Positions 3,001 to 7,983 of a stretch of DNA of 64,000 nt are shown here, in pieces. Location of the stretch: sequence record MW384823.1; one strand, 5' to 3'. The notes beneath the pieces are model-generated. The model was not told the origin of the DNA. It saw only the letters and a list, made by a program, of their open reading frames with translations, and did no database searches. The stretch's first letter is position 1; each line of letters starts with the position of its first letter. The translations under genes and the position numbers were made by a program.

Positions 3001-3587
3001 GACCCAGTGCATCTTTTCGGGCTGGGTAGGGTTGATGTCCCTACCTGCGCGGTGTTCGTTAAGGCTGGTAACGTTCGCTAAGACCTATCGCATACCCGTA
3101 AGTCGATAGTAGCCGGTTACACAAAGAACTATCCATTGGGTAGGTAACTGACCGTTCACGATCTCATTAGGTGAGCAAATAATCTATGCAAGGACTTCTA
3201 GGATTTGTGCTCGACATGATGGGTAGCTTACGCCGCCTCATCAAGCAGTTACGAATCTGGAAGCTTGCCCATTACTGGTTTACAGGCGAAAAGGCTTCTC
3301 GTGAGAGAGCCACATGCAAACTGCGTATTTACATTAGTATGTTCACGGCTGTGAGCATAGGTCAAGCCCCGGAACGATAAGCCGGTCAGCTACGCCTGTA
3401 AAATACAATCTGAAAATCATAATGGGATTAAGTTCCCAGATTTGAAAAGGCGACTGTGTGTCGTCGGCGATAACCCCCCGTCGTGGACTCGGTTATCCCA
3501 AAGGTAATGTGAAAGGGGTTGGTGCTTGGAGGCGCTAAGACCGGCGGATACGCTGGCTCAGAAGAAGAAGTCCATCAACCCCATTCT
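3001..3587 (+). ncRNA. putative large structured non-coding RNA region (about 590 nt), or several tandem small RNAs
   Basis: No credible ORF; helices 3219-3229/3261-3272, 3279-3288/3393-3402 (10 bp perfect), 3293-3311 (GTGA tetraloop), 3338-3346/3351-3359, 3469-3475/3491-3497, 3515-3524/3573-3582. Confidence 0.55.
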
Positions 3588-3642
3588 CACCTAAGTAACT
3601 CTTTTACAGAGTGTTACTTATATATGCGAAAGCGAGGTGAAC

Positions 3643-3969
3643 ATGGGAACGTATCGTGAAGGTCCTGAAAGTACGGTGACTCACCGTAGTCATGATTACT
3701 CTGTGGATGCATTGCTGGATATAGCGGAACGTCATAGCCTCGTTCAAATTCCAGTGTCTAGAATAGAATGGATTTTAAACGAGACTACGCTCGATGATGA
3801 GCGGGTTAAGAATGCAGATACGGATTATCCAATAATCGTGCTGCACGAAGGAAGTTTGTATATTGTATTAGACGGTGCCCATCGCCTTGCGAAGGCGGTT
3901 GCCGAAGGGCGGGACACCATCGCAGCCAAGATACTTGTGCCTGCGAATCTACCGAAACCGGTACGATAA
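3643..3969 (+). CDS. small ParB/sulfiredoxin-fold protein
   Basis: YPIIV...VLDGAHRLAKA signature; GAGG RBS before ATG 3643. Confidence 0.75.
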   Translation: MGTYREGPESTVTHRSHDYSVDALLDIAERHSLVQIPVSRIEWILNETTLDDERVKNADTDYPIIVLHEGSLYIVLDGAHRLAKAVAEGRDTIAAKILVPANLPKPVR

Positions 3970-3971
3970 AA

Positions 3972-4000
3972 AGTCTAATTACAAGTTTACACTGTATTAT
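3972..4000 (+). promoter_or_regulatory. putative tRNA-operon promoter, copy 2
   Basis: 19-nt exact repeat of 812-830 followed by ACTGTATTAT, ending one base before a structured RNA at 4001. Confidence 0.55.
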
Positions 4001-4084
4001 GTCGGAAACCCGATTTGATGTTGCACAGGGCGCTACGCTGCGGCGTTTGCCGGTGTGCAGGGTTAGGTCGGGATTCTGGCACCT
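4001..4084 (+). ncRNA. long-stem RNA Z
   Basis: 4001-4013/4068-4080 pair (12 of 13 positions), inner helices TTGCAC/GTGCAG and ACGC-TGCG-GCGT, 3' tail ACC(T). Confidence 0.5.
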
Positions 4085-4088
4085 ATTT

Positions 4089-4173
4089 GGCGGGTTACTC
4101 AAGCGGCAACGAGAGCAGACTGTAAATCTGTTGACTTCGGTCTTCGGTGGTTCGAGTCCACCACACGCCACCA
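4089..4173 (+). tRNA. trnY: tRNA-Tyr(GTA)
   Basis: GCAGA-CT GTA AA-TCTGT arm, variable arm GAC-TTCG-GTC, A73 plus CCA; G.A mismatch in acceptor. Confidence 0.93.
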
Positions 4174-4179
4174 AACAGT

Positions 4180-4254
4180 TGGGGTATAGCCAAGCGGTAA
4201 GGCCCAGGGCTTTGATCCCTGTATGCCTAGGTTCGATTCCTAGTGCCCCTGCCA
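4180..4254 (+). tRNA. trnQ: tRNA-Gln(TTG)
   Basis: CAGGG-CT TTG AT-CCCTG arm, unpaired 1:72, G73 plus CCA. Confidence 0.93.
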
Positions 4255-4259
4255 CACAA

Positions 4260-4481
4260 TGGTACCTGTCACAGCAGCCCTTGAGGCTTACGCGAAGATG
4301 ACTGGCAGCCTCCTTTTACCGGGTAACACATTCCTGCCAGCGTGCTATTGCCGCGAAGGTTTGTCCCCGGTGTCGTGCGTTATTCGGGTCTACCCACGGT
4401 CTGCGGACGGTGCGCTGATGTCTCGATATACGCCATAGGGCAGCCTTGAGAACTCCGTGGGATTCGGAGGGGTACCACCCA
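4260..4481 (+). ncRNA. RNA A: about 220-nt RNA with a tRNA-like acceptor stem and T-arm
   Basis: GGTACCT(4261-4267)/GGGTACC(4470-4476) 7 bp, adjacent CTCCG-TGGGATT-CGGAG 5-bp/7-nt arm, tail A-CCCA. Confidence 0.55.
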
Positions 4482-4552
4482 TTCTTGTGTTTCCTTATCC
4501 TGAAGACATTCGTAAGACAAATCCATTCGTGGTCGAGGAAACACAGAACCCA
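4482..4552 (+). ncRNA. RNA B: 13-bp stem RNA ending C-CCA
   Basis: TTC(T)TGTGTTTCCT/AGGAAACACAGAA then CCCA; abuts RNA A, 4 nt before tRNA-Asp. Confidence 0.6.
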
Positions 4553-4556
4553 TTCT

Positions 4557-4631
4557 AGGACTGTAGTTCAGTGGGAGAACGCCGCCCTGTCACGGCGGAG
4601 GTCGCGGGTTCGAAACCCGTCAGTCCTGCCA
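4557..4631 (+). tRNA. trnD: tRNA-Asp(GTC)
   Basis: CCGCC-CT GTC AC-GGCGG arm, G73 plus CCA. Confidence 0.95.
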
Positions 4632-4639
4632 TTTTCAAA

Positions 4640-4715
4640 TGCGTCTTAGCTCAGTTGGTAGAGCGCACCCCTGATAAGGGTGAGGTCACTGGTTCAAGTC
4701 CAGTAGATGCAACCA
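4640..4715 (+). tRNA. trnI: tRNA-Ile(GAT)
   Basis: CACCC-CT GAT AA-GGGTG arm, A73 plus CCA. Confidence 0.95.
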
Positions 4716-4721
4716 AACACT

Positions 4722-4799
4722 GGTGTATGTAGTTCAGTTGGTTAGAATTCCGGCTTGTGACGTCGGAGGTCGAGAGTTCAAGTCTCTCCATACACCCCA
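4722..4799 (+). tRNA. trnH: tRNA-His(GTG) with encoded G-1
   Basis: G-1:C73 pair, CCGGC-TT GTG AC-GTCGG arm, CCA. Confidence 0.95.
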
Positions 4800-4805
4800 A
4801 ACAAT

Positions 4806-4881
4806 GCTCCCATCGTCTAGAGGCCAAGGACCCCAGGTTTTCAGTCTGGTAACCCCGGTTCAAATCCGGGTGGGAGTACCA
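4806..4881 (+). tRNA. trnE: tRNA-Glu(TTC)
   Basis: CCAGG-TT TTC AG-TCTGG arm, TTCAAAT T-loop, CCA. Confidence 0.92.
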
Positions 4882-4903
4882 TGTTATCCTCACGTAAATC
4901 ATC

Positions 4904-5006
4904 GCCGGTGTAAGGAAGTGGCCAAACCTAAGTAGGTCGTGAGGTAAAAGCTCACCACTGAACACCCTAAGGGTTCCTGAGGTTCGAGTCCTCAGTACCG
5001 GCACCA
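4904..5006 (+). tRNA. atypical 103-nt Leu-like tRNA with enlarged anticodon arm; anticodon undetermined
   Basis: GCCGGTG/TACCGGC acceptor, A73-CCA, D-arm, long variable arm, TTCGAGT T-loop; anticodon loop 12 nt longer than normal, with inner GTGAG/CTCAC hairpin. Confidence 0.65.
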
Positions 5007-5007
5007 T

Positions 5008-5183
5008 GTTCTCTTGCTGTGGGAAATAGAAGCGAACGTAGAAACGCCGATTAGCTTAAAGCTTAGAGCATCTTACCCTAGCGGTAAGGCAGTAGGGGCG
5101 CAACCCGAATTCCCTATCGGCAACGGCCTGCTTGTCAGGATTAGAAACATCTACGTGGATGGGTACTTCTACAGCGAGAACCA
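5008..5183 (+). ncRNA. RNA C: long-stem RNA enclosing a tRNA-like domain, ends CCA
   Basis: Outer stem 5008-5022/5169-5181, inner helix 5036-5042/5150-5156, tRNA-like cloverleaf 5046-5121; followed by AACAGT, the same spacer as after tRNA-Tyr. Confidence 0.6.
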
Positions 5184-5189
5184 AACAGT

Positions 5190-5262
5190 GGGAGCATTGT
5201 CCATTGTGACACCGGCAAAGGTTTCGTACCTTGCGGGTTGGGCGGAAGCCCGATGTTCCCCC
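5190..5262 (+). ncRNA. RNA D: 10-bp stem three-way-junction RNA
   Basis: GGGAGCATTG/CGATGTTCCC; inner hairpins with TTCG(T) and GGAA loops. Confidence 0.5.
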
Positions 5263-5383
5263 GAACGCTGGCCTTCTGGCCAATACAGTGAAAGCTTACC
5301 CTTGCCGTTGATCACCTCTTCTGCTGCTGCCAACACACTGTATAACCGGAATCAGTCCTGCCTTAAATGGCAAGCGTTCACCC
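5263..5383 (+). ncRNA. RNA E: cloverleaf-like RNA
   Basis: GAACGCT/AGCGTTC 7 bp plus ACCC; GGCC/GGCC arm; ATACAGTG/CACTGTAT arm with large loop; TGCC-TTAAAT-GGCA arm. Confidence 0.5.
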
Positions 5384-5388
5384 TTTAC

Positions 5389-5466
5389 GTTTCCTCAAGG
5401 CGGCTTGGGGTGTTATCTCTCGGCTCTGTTGGGTAACATCGTGGTTCAACTCCATGGGAAACACCA
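5389..5466 (+). ncRNA. RNA F: remodelled tRNA-like RNA with A-CCA end
   Basis: GTTTCCT/GGGAAAC acceptor, GTGG-TTCAACT-CCAT T-arm, 9-bp central arm with 14-nt loop, no canonical anticodon loop. Confidence 0.6.
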
Positions 5467-5472
5467 AACAAA

Positions 5473-5542
5473 GACCTCTCGCGTTGGTGTGCTAAAAGTG
5501 CTTTATTGCGCTGCTAGGATGGTTCGAATCCATCAGAGGTAA
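5473..5542 (+). pseudogene. degenerate tRNA (no CCA, 6-nt anticodon loop)
   Basis: ACCTCT/AGAGGT stem, GATGG-TTCGAAT-CCATC T-arm; D-arm eroded. Confidence 0.5.
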
Positions 5543-5619
5543 GTGCACGGCTGTTAAGCTGGTTAACACCCGACTCATAATCGGATATTCGCGGGTTCGA
5601 TTCCCGCTCGTGTGCGCCC
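5543..5619 (+). tRNA. atypical tRNA-Met/Ile2(CAT)
   Basis: CCGA-CT CAT AA-TCGG arm, GCGGG-TTCGATT-CCCGC T-arm; 6-bp D-stem TGTTAA/TTAACA, wobble-rich acceptor, ends GCCC. Confidence 0.7.
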
Positions 5620-5625
5620 TATTTA

Positions 5626-5701
5626 GACTCTGTAGCTCAGTTGGTAGAGCGGATGACTGTTAATCATCAGGTCACAGGTTCAAGCCCTGTCAGAGTCGCC
5701 A
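5626..5701 (+). tRNA. trnN: tRNA-Asn(GTT)
   Basis: GATGA-CT GTT AA-TCATC arm, G73 plus CCA. Confidence 0.96.
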
Positions 5702-5703
5702 CA

Positions 5704-5774
5704 TTTTGCATTGCCCGAGTCCCGAATGACATTCCGGAAAAATATCATCCATGGTCAAGGGCAGTGCAGAACCA
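5704..5774 (+). ncRNA. RNA G: 13-bp stem RNA ending CCA
   Basis: TTTTGCATTGCCC/GGGCAGTGCAGAA then CCA. Confidence 0.55.
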
Positions 5775-5778
5775 AAAT

Positions 5779-5838
5779 CCCAGCCTTCGCAGAAAAAGCT
5801 TACCTGCATTAGCGGTCCCCTGCGGGGGTTGGGTACCA
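5779..5838 (+). ncRNA. RNA H: 14-bp stem RNA ending TA-CCA
   Basis: CCCAGCCTTCGCAG/CTGCGGGGGTTGGG then TACCA, then a T-rich tract ending the cluster. Confidence 0.5.
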
Positions 5839-5972
5839 CCTTTGTCCGTTTTGTTTTTTTCTCTTAATTGTCTGGCGATGATGGCGGGAACAAAACGGAT
5901 AAAGCCCTAGCGGGGGAAAAGCCGCTAACAACAACAGAAGCAGTAAAAACAGAAGTAAAAGCAGGAGTAGTT

Positions 5973-6785
5973 ATGTTTACTATCTTACGTAAAATCAATG
6001 GTAACCGCACACCAACCGAACACGAATCCCCAACGCTGGGTGATACGAAGTCACAAGTGTTCAAAGATGCGATGTCGCTTTTGACCGAATCCAATAACGT
6101 GCACAACTGCATGGATTCTGGGATGGATGCGAAGCCGTGGATTAACGGCAAACCCAAACCGATTGAAGAATGGGTAGAACGCTTTGAGAAAGTATTCGGT
6201 GCGACCGACGTAGACAACCAAGAGCTGGTTTCTCTGGTCAGTGAACTCGCACCGGGGATGTTTGATAAAGCGAATGCGCGTTTTGCCTCCGACTTTGGTC
6301 AGCTGCAAGAAGCCTTCCTGAAAGACACCGGACAAACCATCATCTGGAAATGTCCGAAAGGACTCCCGATTGATATCCAGTTCCAAGACATCCCCCGTCA
6401 GTCTGTTGAAACGCTCCACACAACTCTCGATTTCATCGAAGCTGGTGAATTGAAGTTTGCGGTGTTCAACAGCAAGGCGTTGTGGGATGGGTATAACTCC
6501 GCTGAACTGTTTGGCGGAGAAGCCACCGAGATTTCCTCGGTAGAACTCCAGCACGTTTACCATGACGATACGGCGATGCCGCAAGAAGCGGTACTGAAAG
6601 CCAGCCGTCGTGGTACCCGCACCATGGAACAGGTCATTGGGGTGCTTGCCTATGGCAGCTCCGAACAGCCTGACCCAACCACGGGCAATGTGCCGGTCAC
6701 CGTGATGACCTACGAGTTTATCTACCAAGGCGATGAAGTCTACATTACGAACCGCCACGGCAAGACTGTAGACTCCATCCGTTAA
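5973..6785 (+). CDS. hypothetical protein
   Basis: Start moved to ATG 5973 (GCAGGAG RBS); about 270 aa. Confidence 0.8.
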   Translation: MFTILRKINGNRTPTEHESPTLGDTKSQVFKDAMSLLTESNNVHNCMDSGMDAKPWINGKPKPIEEWVERFEKVFGATDVDNQELVSLVSELAPGMFDKANARFASDFGQLQEAFLKDTGQTIIWKCPKGLPIDIQFQDIPRQSVETLHTTLDFIEAGELKFAVFNSKALWDGYNSAELFGGEATEISSVELQHVYHDDTAMPQEAVLKASRRGTRTMEQVIGVLAYGSSEQPDPTTGNVPVTVMTYEFIYQGDEVYITNRHGKTVDSIR

Positions 6786-6887
6786 GCATTAGCATGCTCG
6801 CTAATACCCGCCCTGAGGATTGGCCTCCTCATGCTTGAAGGGCGACTCTCCTGTAGTACGCTTTGTAAGTCGACGTAAATCGGTACG

Positions 6888-6930
6888 CCCTCTCCCCGAA
6901 AAGGGAGAGGGTAGTATCGTATATTTTTTT
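6888..6930 (+). terminator. intrinsic terminator
   Basis: CCCTCTCCC/GGGAGAGGG stem, downstream T-run. Confidence 0.6.
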
Positions 6931-6935
6931 GGATA

Positions 6936-6951
6936 TATATTACCTAGGTGA
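6936..6951 (+). promoter_or_regulatory. phage early (virion RNAP)-type promoter
   Basis: TATATTACC-TAG-GTGA; matches phiKZ early consensus TATATTAC and five other copies here. Confidence 0.7.
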
Positions 6952-6999
6952 GATTAAACTATAATCTTAACCTACCATTAGACTTCCGAGGATAAACTT

Positions 7000-7983
7000 A
7001 TGCATTACGCACCAATGTCAGCACACGAAACCTTTGCCGCTCGTGGTTACAGCCCAGAAGAAGGTAAACGTATTCGCGGCTATCTACCCCGTCGCTTTGG
7101 CGATATCAGTAATGCGCTCCCTTTAACGAACGCAGAGTTCTGGCTGGCGTACGAGTGCATGAAGCACTACAACGATAACAGTCGTGAACGTGGACGTTTC
7201 TACGCCGCAGGCCCATTCAATTTCCAATCCAATGGAAAAGTCAACTACCGTTCTGAAAAACTCAACGAAGACTTCTCCATGGTGGAATTCATCCGCCACT
7301 TCGGTGATACGGTGTTCACTGACTTCGACGCTGAATTGGGCATGAAAGTTCCACGCACCAATGCAGACGGTTCGCTGGTCATGAAGAACCGTATGGTGGC
7401 CACTCGCTTAGTCGAGATCGAGAAACAGGCACAGCCGCAGTCCGAAGACTTTTCGAGCTGGCACACCACGAGCTGGATGAACTTCCCGGTCGGTTCACTC
7501 TCCTTACCACCGACGGGTAGCATCACGCCTGAAACGGTATTGATGGCAAGCCTACACGGTATGATGGCGCAGGAGTATGTTAATACCCAAGCTGGGCGTA
7601 TGCTGCACCCGACTCTCGATTACAAGTGGGTTGCGACTTACGTGTACCTGAAGCGGTTGTACCATGCGCGTGACCGCCAGTTCGGTCAAGACTATCATGG
7701 TATCCGTAGCACCATTGAGATGAATCTGCGCTTCCGTACAAGTACCGCCATGTACCCAAGTGATGTCATGACGCCGCCGCACTTCTTCCACATCGATGCG
7801 GATCGTGTTATGTCTGCAAACGGTATTCTGAACCACCCACGTTTACACAATACGAAACCTATGGGCTTTTATGAGTCCCTGTATCGCTTCAACAACAACG
7901 GCCATGTTGCTGCCATTACAACCATTCCTACTGAACTTTTCAATGAGTACAGCGAAGAAGAATGGAAAGCAGTTTTAGCATAA
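7000..7983 (+). CDS. hypothetical protein (putative early gene)
   Basis: 327 aa ORF, GAGGA RBS, downstream of early promoter motif. Confidence 0.8.
   Translation: MHYAPMSAHETFAARGYSPEEGKRIRGYLPRRFGDISNALPLTNAEFWLAYECMKHYNDNSRERGRFYAAGPFNFQSNGKVNYRSEKLNEDFSMVEFIRHFGDTVFTDFDAELGMKVPRTNADGSLVMKNRMVATRLVEIEKQAQPQSEDFSSWHTTSWMNFPVGSLSLPPTGSITPETVLMASLHGMMAQEYVNTQAGRMLHPTLDYKWVATYVYLKRLYHARDRQFGQDYHGIRSTIEMNLRFRTSTAMYPSDVMTPPHFFHIDADRVMSANGILNHPRLHNTKPMGFYESLYRFNNNGHVAAITTIPTELFNEYSEEEWKAVLA

Follow-up and report, generated by a model that had tools for sequence, protein, structure and literature searches.

What is encoded in DNA that lies in the middle of a phage tRNA array and is itself recognised by none of the usual tRNA searches? 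The question is raised by Erwinia phage pEa_SNUABM_43, a jumbo phage of the genus Machinavirus with Erwinia amylovora as its host (241,904 bp; MW384823), in which two groups of tRNA genes (4089-4881 and 5543-5701, all on the + strand according to ARAGORN and Rfam) are separated by 660 nt (4882-5542) that have no ARAGORN or Rfam match and no feature in the annotation of the record. The window analysed here, 64 kb in length, is the start of this record and is identical to it, the coordinates being the same in both. Within the gap, an earlier note had singled out 5008-5183, with tRNA genes on either side and on the same strand, and had read this element from its letters as a tRNA-like cloverleaf nested inside a larger, CCA-ended RNA that was reminiscent of the bacterial Y RNAs.

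The array around the element is a mosaic, in which degenerate tRNA-like pieces are joined and short direct repeats lie at the joints between modules (GTGG in the element, CCATGTT around the module upstream of it). The element is the first of at least four separately closed modules in a block of ~460 nt (5008-5470) that is common to the Machina subclade and does not form one large fold. Parts of this block recur across several genera of jumbo phages that infect Erwinia, Salmonella and Proteus, and the modules of the array have been reshuffled between phage genera. The second module (5190-5262), a cloverleaf with a GNRA hairpin and a fold energy far below that of shuffled sequences (z = -3.6), is present in 36 records of Seoulvirus, Erskinevirus and Machinavirus phages infecting Salmonella, Proteus and Erwinia, and in phage Asesino it occupies a tRNA-sized slot with a tRNA on each side; because its pair count was affected by a 1-nt misalignment, only the GNRA hairpin of this module is taken as supported. 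The third and fourth modules are also carried by ChrisDB, pEa_SNUABM_4, pEa_SNUABM_9, Stratton and others, and in pEa_SNUABM_6 the fourth module is interrupted by a homing (HNH) endonuclease gene located ~260 nt downstream of the element. A scan of the + strand for promoter and terminator consensus sequences yielded nothing useful; these phages have their own polymerases.

The minimum-energy fold of 5008-5183 and the RNAalifold consensus of six phages contain every helix that the earlier note had proposed, each in the place assigned to it, with the bulged outer stem emerging as 15 bp interrupted by a 2-nt bulge (Table 1). The 176-nt element has 47 pairs, all of which are formed in the five distinct sequences compared. 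The T-like loop, which had been described as enlarged, comprises 14 nt, and the T-like arm as a whole has two competing folds that the data do not separate. Fold energy is not better than that of shuffled sequences, either for the whole element (z = -1.0) or for the cloverleaf of the window (z = -0.6). The heptamer UAGAARC occurs in three copies within 122 nt, at 5027, 5039 and 5142.

Table 1. Coordinates of structural features in and next to the element, numbered as in the window
Feature	Position	Strand	Details
Outer stem, 5' strand	5008..5024	+	Pairs with 5167-5181; 15 pairs, 14 invariant, one U-A/U-G
Joiner J1, single-stranded, invariant	5025..5035	+	Has UAGAAGC; near-miss AGCGAACG at 5031-5038
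Inner helix, 5' strand, ACGUAGA	5036..5042	+	7 bp with 5150-5156, invariant
tRNA-derived cloverleaf, normal arm order	5046..5121	+	R1 positions 39-114; ARAGORN mitochondrial mode
Acceptor-like stem, 6 bp	5046-5051 with 5116-5121	+	Single-sequence fold, RNAalifold
D-like arm	5054-5069	+	4-bp stem, 8-nt loop without GG; palindrome AAGCUU in the loop
Closed hairpin in the place of the anticodon arm	5071..5089	+	7 bp; CUAGC loop here, UUCG in relatives
T-like arm	5094-5115	+	14-nt loop
Small hairpin CCUG/CAGG, 4 bp	5127..5139	+	Invariant
Invariant joiner with UAGAAAC	5140..5149	+	Third UAGAARC copy within 122 nt
Inner helix, 3' strand, UCUACGU	5150..5156	+	Single-sequence fold, RNAalifold, pair count
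136-nt module missing from the SPAsTU hairpin	5023..5158	+	Limits ambiguous by GTGG (5019-5022, 5155-5158)
Outer stem, 3' strand	5167..5181	+	Fold and pair count; 5155-5178 shared with SPAsTU
Two unpaired 3' nt (CA; AA in relatives) and spacer AACAGT	5182..5189	+	Next module starts at G5190

The core of the element descends from a tRNA. When the covariance model built for the element (R1) was compared with tRNAs using Infernal with its filters off, full-length alignments of positions 39-114 of the model were obtained to over 20 true tRNAs, from T4 and from related jumbo phages (12-20 bits), and 5046-5122 was called by ARAGORN in its mitochondrial mode alone; the standard, intron, low-threshold and tmRNA modes made no call on the cloverleaf, and the Rfam tRNA model (RF00005) had no match on 4995-5195 at E ≤ 10. 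On the strength of the alignments and of the mitochondrial call, we regard the core as a tRNA derivative with the normal order of arms (acceptor, D, hairpin, variable, T), in agreement with the earlier statement that the arms are unpermuted. The core retains U8-A9, a D stem of 4 bp, a purine at position 26 and a variable region of 5 nt, and has lost the open anticodon loop, the canonical T loop, the GG of the D loop and the free acceptor end. In place of the 5-bp stem and 7-nt loop that are the rule for the anticodon arm of a tRNA, there is a hairpin with 7 bp and a loop of either 5 nt (CUAGC) or 4 nt (UUCG). Since this hairpin is closed by CUAGC in pEa_SNUABM_43 and by a UUCG tetraloop in its relatives, no codon is decoded. 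The acceptor-like stem has no NCCA and continues instead into AACGG and then the inner helix; with the anticodon arm closed and the acceptor-like stem devoid of a free end, both aminoacylation and decoding are impossible. Mimicry of tRNA can only be partial, because the nucleotides that form the elbow (the GG of the D loop and the canonical T loop) are absent. A tmRNA was also considered and rejected, given that ARAGORN found none even at lowered thresholds and Rfam found none.

Conservation was assessed by realigning seven copies of the element (five distinct) with R1 and counting pairs on the model-fitted alignment. Each of the 235 pair cells in the five distinct sequences holds a standard pair, and the proportion of standard pairs falls to 40-53% when the 3' partners are slid by 1-3 columns as a control. 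Six pairs are altered on one side only among the five distinct sequences, always with pairing kept, and a metagenome copy adds a seventh change of this kind, from G-C to G-U in the D stem; all seven are transitions that keep their pairs, where only about half would be expected to do so if unconstrained, by a rough estimate. Several of the G-U pairs are valid on the + strand only. Double changes are confined to the closed hairpin at 5071-5089, in which two pairs are fully compensatory, with a U-G intermediate of such a change preserved in pSal-SNUABM-04; the hairpin also has two one-sided changes, and every one of its cells is paired. It is the sole hypervariable patch of the element (~13 differences in 25 nt), where the sequence has been largely replaced between copies, yet a perfect 7-bp stem is retained. 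Neither indels nor stem-breaking changes are found in six distinct copies. Both the outer helix and the inner one are near-invariant (14 of 15 pairs in the former, all pairs in the latter), so that no covariation is to be seen there, and for the invariant inner helix covariation accordingly speaks neither for nor against the pairing. The high identity of the relatives outside the hairpin (~97%) made the shuffle control of the pair count a weak one (39/500). As the neighbouring protein genes have identities of 85-97%, the value of ~97% represents no clear excess of conservation.

Taken together, the fold, its maintenance and the tRNA alignments identify 5008-5183 as a real, structurally maintained RNA module of tRNA origin. 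Such a module might still be a decaying relic, that is, a tRNA pseudogene that was lodged in a hairpin by recombination within the array and is now passively transcribed, degraded and functionless. The mosaic make-up of the array, with its degenerate tRNA-like pieces and short repeats at the joints, is in keeping with this scenario, as are the lack of the element in sister lineages, its conservation at the level of neighbouring genes and its unremarkable fold energy. A relic is, however, difficult to reconcile with paired columns in which every change keeps the pairing, with a heavily rewritten patch that is still a perfect 7-bp hairpin and has a U-G intermediate in one phage, with six distinct copies free of indels and stem-breaking changes, and with the intact register of the junctions described below. 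We therefore consider the relic possible, if rather unlikely.

The limits of the element coincide with the register in which the true tRNAs of the array are spaced. A ten-base junction, CCAAACANTG, spans the 3' ends of tRNA-Ile, tRNA-His and the element; it has exact matches at three places in the 64 kb (4713, 4797 and 5181), all of them ends of modules of the array, where ~0.5 exact matches would be expected by chance in the window, and versions with one mismatch are found at the ends of tRNA-Tyr, tRNA-Gln and the 5389-5467 module. The element and the true tRNA 3' ends have in common the junction CCA-AACANT-G. Because the count of CCAAACANTG exceeds the chance value, we place the 3' limit of the element (~5183) and the first nucleotide of the following module (G5190) in the register of the true tRNAs. 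The 5' limit, G5008, lies one U after the CCA (5004-5006) of the upstream tRNA-like gene. The tRNA-register junction thus supports the boundaries 5008-5183 proposed in the earlier note. Its 'CCA end' stands in part: the letters CCA are present in pEa_SNUABM_43 and its twin pEa_SNUABM_42, which is 100% identical over 4995-5195, and every other distinct copy has CAA at this end. Nor do these letters form a free NCCA tail, given that C5181 is paired with G5008 and only CA is unpaired, with no discriminator plus CCA.

We favour, with moderate confidence, the interpretation that 5008-5183 encodes an accessory, non-decoding, tRNA-derived structured RNA of ~176 nt that is processed together with the tRNAs. 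The + strand of the element would be transcribed within a polycistronic tRNA precursor, from which host RNase P, an enzyme that accepts long hairpins besides tRNAs, would release the 5' end at G5008 by cutting after U-1. The 3' end would arise in two steps, RNase P cutting again before G5190 and an exonuclease then trimming the RNA to the terminal stem. The product is predicted to fold into a 15-bp rod, the loop of which bears the 7-bp helix, the cloverleaf and the small hairpin. Proteins that recognise the body of tRNAs could bind such an RNA, which would be neither charged nor used in decoding nor cut in an anticodon loop. As a stable mimic of tRNA, it might occupy a protein that recognises tRNAs, be this an enzyme of processing or modification or a host defence factor that targets tRNAs. 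Function as a tRNA mimic appears to be the most likely role, within which use as a decoy or a scaffold is an inference only. Bacterial defences that target tRNAs, and the counter-measures of phages, are under active study (e.g. PMC10264068).

The junctions that lend themselves to this interpretation could also belong to a cis-acting processing or punctuation element, which recruits RNase P, RNase III or RNase E so that the precursor is cut at the right places and has no role in trans. Besides the tRNA-register junctions on either side, such a signal would account for the upstream CCA being just 1 nt away, and the long bulged stems of the element are of the kind that is typical of RNase III substrates. 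Processing signals of a comparable sort, the t-elements of plant mitochondria, are documented (PMC1920247). Yet the neighbouring true tRNAs are processed with spacers of 6-8 nt and without any such element, and the same tRNAs are joined without it in related phages, all of which renders a purely cis-acting signal unlikely. This reading and the decaying relic are nevertheless the serious rivals of an accessory RNA.

A protein-coding interpretation is already present in the databases. The records of Machina (gp16), Huxley (gp17) and Parshik (gp18) annotate a CDS of 98 residues over the element, and in pEa_SNUABM_43 an open frame 0 of 143 codons runs from 5008, a frame that several relatives also keep open. 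However, four relatives have a 1-nt deletion near 5227 that throws the second half into another frame, a second indel lies near 5388, and the substitutions are nearly all non-synonymous and without third-position bias. There is neither an ATG nor a ribosome-binding site, the sole start being a TTG 8 nt after the upstream CCA (5004-5006), and a Pfam search yielded no family match. A small protein gene is thus highly improbable, and the protein annotation over the element in these three GenBank records is very probably wrong.

The element is the least widespread of the four modules of the block and is so far known from a single small phage clade, with copies in Machina, Huxley, Parshik, pEa_SNUABM_6, _10, _42 and _43 and pSal-SNUABM-04; beyond these genomes, it occurs only in a single contig of the JGI metagenomes and in some sequencing runs. 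A 'distant' blastn search against 50,697 phage records retrieved 10 records, all ~90% identical or more. Pattern scans of IMG/VR returned Huxley only, plus one chance match in a tail-fibre gene; the scan of JGI metagenomes added one extra close copy and three chance matches, and the scan of bacterial genomes gave no copy. R1 was run with filters off on the stretches that hold the tRNA clusters of eight other jumbo phages, where it found no copy, and under stricter filters on nine whole phage records (the window's own and those eight), where only the window's own copy was recovered. One full-length match of the model, at L015 3981-4125 (CYK score 7.7), was dismissed because it consists of a genuine tRNA-Ile between flanks that match by chance. 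The sister lineages ChrisDB, pEa_SNUABM_4 and pEa_SNUABM_9, which have the same array, and other genera are without the element, which is therefore dispensable.

The history of the element is illuminated by Salmonella phage SPAsTU (Seoulvirus), in which the outer stem is present as a plain hairpin and the 136-nt tRNA-like module is absent. In the window, the 24-nt stretch 5155-5178 differs from SPAsTU at one position (23 of 24 identical), whereas in four close relatives it is fully identical (24 of 24), and when R1 is aligned to SPAsTU, 144 inner positions of the model are replaced by 8 nt. Compared with SPAsTU, pEa_SNUABM_43 has 136 extra nucleotides (5023-5158) that are bounded by the direct repeat GTGG; in other Seoulvirus genomes, even the plain hairpin is missing. 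Because SPAsTU keeps the outer stem without the inner module, the nesting represents a genuine insertion or deletion, and the earlier structural reading, in which a long terminal stem closes a larger RNA with a tRNA-like cloverleaf inside it, not only holds but is strengthened. The difference may be due either to an insertion into the hairpin loop or to a deletion between the 4-nt repeats after lateral transfer.

A contig from a wastewater sequencing run has a bearing on the same module. It is 163 nt long, has a depth of 7 and matches 5019-5157 without a mismatch, including the hairpin variant of pEa_SNUABM_43, and it diverges beyond the match by 11 and 13 nt, at flanks that are invariant in all known relatives. 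Within the ambiguity of GTGG, the matching part equals the module that is absent from SPAsTU. Any one of three origins would account for such a contig: read-through into an adapter, a genomic context that is new, or an excised form.

These observations could be accommodated by a mobile or excisable cassette, in which the 136-nt module (5023-5158) enters or leaves the hairpin loops of tRNA-array RNAs at the level of DNA (homing, microhomology) or of RNA (in the manner of an intron). The SPAsTU hairpin with its GTGG repeats would then be an empty site and the wastewater contig, with its divergent ends, a free or relocated form of the module, and the HNH endonuclease gene ~260 nt downstream in pEa_SNUABM_6 might be seen in the same light. 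We find this very unlikely on both counts, for the module itself and for the meaning given to the hairpin and the contig. Each genome that has the module has one copy of it, and eight other jumbo-phage genomes have none; Rfam reveals no ribozyme or intron match, and the group I signature (a U preceding the 5' site and a 3'-terminal G) is absent; moreover, the polymorphism is explained just as well by a deletion in SPAsTU between the GTGG repeats, and the ends of contigs prove nothing.

For the accessory RNA that we prefer, some indication of accumulation comes from public sequence data. Parts of the block were found in 20 sequencing runs, and the region 3500-7500 was compared with four of them. 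The genome run of a relative covered this region evenly, at ~8x. Three metagenome libraries labelled as RNA-Seq gave contigs on the array alone (~4058-6045), the genes on either side having next to no depth; two of these runs were rated 'probably DNA' and the third is an unconfirmed guess at RNA, and contigs are blind to ends and levels. Contigs restricted to the array fit a stable RNA from the tRNA and ncRNA array, a correspondence that is suggestive only.

Among known systems, the bacterial Y RNAs were the first candidates for comparison, since the earlier note had likened the element to YrlA. RNAs of the YrlA type measure 80-130 nt, possess a Ro60-binding stem with the motif GNCGAAN0-1G near the 5' end, and carry canonical T and D arms in permuted order, with a stem-loop between them that replaces the acceptor stem; their gene lies within ~4 kb of the Ro60 (TROVE) gene, on the same strand (PMC4201824). 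The likeness resides in a long stem formed by the ends in combination with a non-decoding tRNA-like domain, and Salmonella, which is among the hosts of the phage clade, has a known rsr-yrlBA-rtcBA operon (PMC4201824). The YrlA size, Ro60 neighbour, motif and permuted canonical arms, by contrast, are all lacking in the element. The YrlA model RF02553 (gathering score 69 bits) has no match at the gathering score, and no Rfam family at all is matched on 4995-5195 at E ≤ 10. Over three nested ranges, searched at the gathering score and at E ≤ 10, Rfam gave nothing in 4882-5542, and across 3800-6200 at E ≤ 10 no YrlA match falls on the element, the weak YrlA matches being true tRNAs. Six-frame searches of the whole 241,904-bp phage record returned 0 TROVE/Ro60 candidates, with the controls detected, and no RtcB either, which extends to the complete genome the earlier observation that the window has no Ro60 gene. 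An exact GNCGAAN0-1G is absent from 5008-5183, where AGCGAACG at 5031-5038 differs at the first G, and occurrences with one mismatch are at the chance expectation. With 176 nt, the element is also beyond the range of Y RNA lengths (PMC4201824). Rfam, the gene searches, the motif, the non-canonical T loop, the unpermuted arms and the length thus all argue against kinship with the Y RNAs, and a Y-RNA-like tether for Ro60 protein is hardly credible.

Parallels to the nested cloverleaf are provided by mascRNA of MALAT1 and by the t-elements of plant mitochondria: in both, a cloverleaf of tRNA origin whose anticodon arm is shortened or closed lies within a longer transcript and is recognised by RNase P or RNase Z. 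Those structures have a free acceptor end and are cut out, whereas the acceptor-like stem of the element runs into a further helix on both sides, and they are eukaryotic or organellar, unlike the phage element. Phage genomes also contain ROOL and GOLLD, large unexplained structured RNAs that lie beside tRNA genes; the element differs from these in having no Rfam match and in being a 176-nt part of a four-module block of ~460 nt.

By its context, the element is most reminiscent of the species 1 (rnaC, 139 nt) and species 2 (rnaD, 119 nt) RNAs of T4. These are also situated inside a phage tRNA cluster, on the strand of the tRNAs and with tRNA-like spacers; according to the annotation of the T4 record, they adjoin tRNA-Arg near the homing endonuclease gene segB, and an adjoining gene of this kind is a further point of likeness. 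The element, too, is a non-tRNA RNA gene in a phage tRNA cluster, on the same strand and with tRNA-like spacing. The structures differ: rnaC has a canonical T arm beside its terminal stem, together with long extra hairpins, whereas in the element a complete cloverleaf, devoid of a canonical T loop, is set into the loop of a hairpin. With filters off, R1 matched only true tRNAs in the T4 cluster and neither rnaC nor rnaD, so that the resemblance does not extend to homology. The architecture of the element is new, and its place, a phage tRNA cluster, is of a known kind. Extra small stable RNAs in phage tRNA clusters, exemplified by species 1 and 2 of T4, have been known for fifty years without their purpose having been found, and we know of no function assigned to those two RNAs since. 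The element described here would extend these T4-type extra RNAs to jumbo phages, in a form with a sealed anticodon, a buried acceptor end and a rod-like stem, and, if stable, such RNAs of tRNA arrays would be candidate tRNA decoys or scaffolds.

The module directly downstream of the tRNA-like element at 5008-5183, a cloverleaf-shaped fold spanning 5190-5262, is present in 36 phage records from Seoulvirus (SPN3US-like), Erskinevirus and Machinavirus, with hosts in Salmonella, Proteus and Erwinia. Nearly all of these records lack an annotation at this position (in one, a hypothetical protein lies under the match), and no Rfam match to the module was obtained. Its fold z-score is -3.6; one of its hairpins carries the conserved loop motif UUCGUACC, and another is capped by a GNRA tetraloop, GGAA, the closing pair of which covaries, being C-G in four sequences versus U-A in three. 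In the following module (5263-5385), the closing stem and the 3' part recur in ChrisDB and pEa_SNUABM_4, _9 and _11, with differing interiors, and the module includes a CUG repeat, the length of which differs by 3 nt in pEa_SNUABM_6. Hypothetical proteins annotated over the RNA block in three relatives (Machina gp16, Huxley gp17 and Parshik gp18) were considered as well; their reading frame is not kept among relatives and, therefore, they are very probably not genes.

Features of the RNA block and the tRNA array in the window and in related phage loci (L-numbers)
Feature	Location	Remarks
Class-II-like tRNA-like gene	window 4904-5006; pEa_SNUABM_29 (L011) 3198-3297	CCA-ended
Cloverleaf-shaped module	window 5190-5262	terminal stem 7-8 bp
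Module	window 5263-5385	closed by GAACGCU / AGCGUUC stem, then ACCC
tRNA-like gene	window 5389-5467; pEa_SNUABM_6 (L006) about 1641-2420	canonical T loop, ACCA end
Degenerate tRNA-like gene	window 5474-5542	good T arm; ARAGORN call only at lowered threshold
Unannotated tRNA, CAU anticodon loop	L012 4330-4440, L013 4870-4975, L008 5050-5150	ChrisDB, pEa_SNUABM_4, _9
Annotated hypothetical proteins over RNA block	Machina (L007) 1211-1507; Huxley (L005) 1211-1507; Parshik (L003) 1492-1788	gp16; gp17; gp18

Two further observations concern the element at 5008-5183. The heptamer UAGAARC occurs in three copies within 122 nt, at 5027, 5039 and 5142, against an expectation of about 0.015 copies for a stretch that long; all three lie in or beside single-stranded joiners and are invariant in relatives. 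Separately, a 163-nt contig from a wastewater sequencing run labelled RNA-Seq (X6) exactly matches the inner module at 5019-5157; the 11 and 13 nt of the contig beyond this match diverge, and yet no known relative shows any variation in the corresponding flanks.

Consecutive tRNA and tRNA-like genes between 4171 and 5473 are separated by a shared motif, CCA-AACANT-G, common to six junctions; the only places in the 64 kb where its exact form, CCAAACANTG, is found are three of these junctions. The motif may represent a leader favoured by RNase P or a site for RNase E.

In the tRNA-like gene at 5389-5467, the 'anticodon' arm is an irregular helix of 10 bp, and compensatory changes (UG/CA to CA/UG) are seen in the stem. 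Five other phages carry homologues with loops of 6-8 nt and no encoded CCA, and in pEa_SNUABM_6 the T loop is interrupted by an inserted HNH homing endonuclease gene. ARAGORN calls the class-II-like gene a tRNA (Thr, cgt) only if a 12-nt intron is allowed, and the gene is flanked by the direct repeat CCATGTT. Most Machina relatives lack it and carry tRNA-Ser(gct) in its place, and a 96%-identical copy is found in another position, after tRNA-Asn, in the Seoulvirus phage pEa_SNUABM_29. At the site of the degenerate gene, relatives encode a 'tRNA-Ile(aat)' of 97-120 nt with a large insertion. Finally, the CAU-loop tRNA of ChrisDB, pEa_SNUABM_4 and _9, which directly precedes tRNA-Asn, has a GC-rich, unusually long extra arm; its counterpart before tRNA-Asn in the window is a tRNA-Met of normal length.
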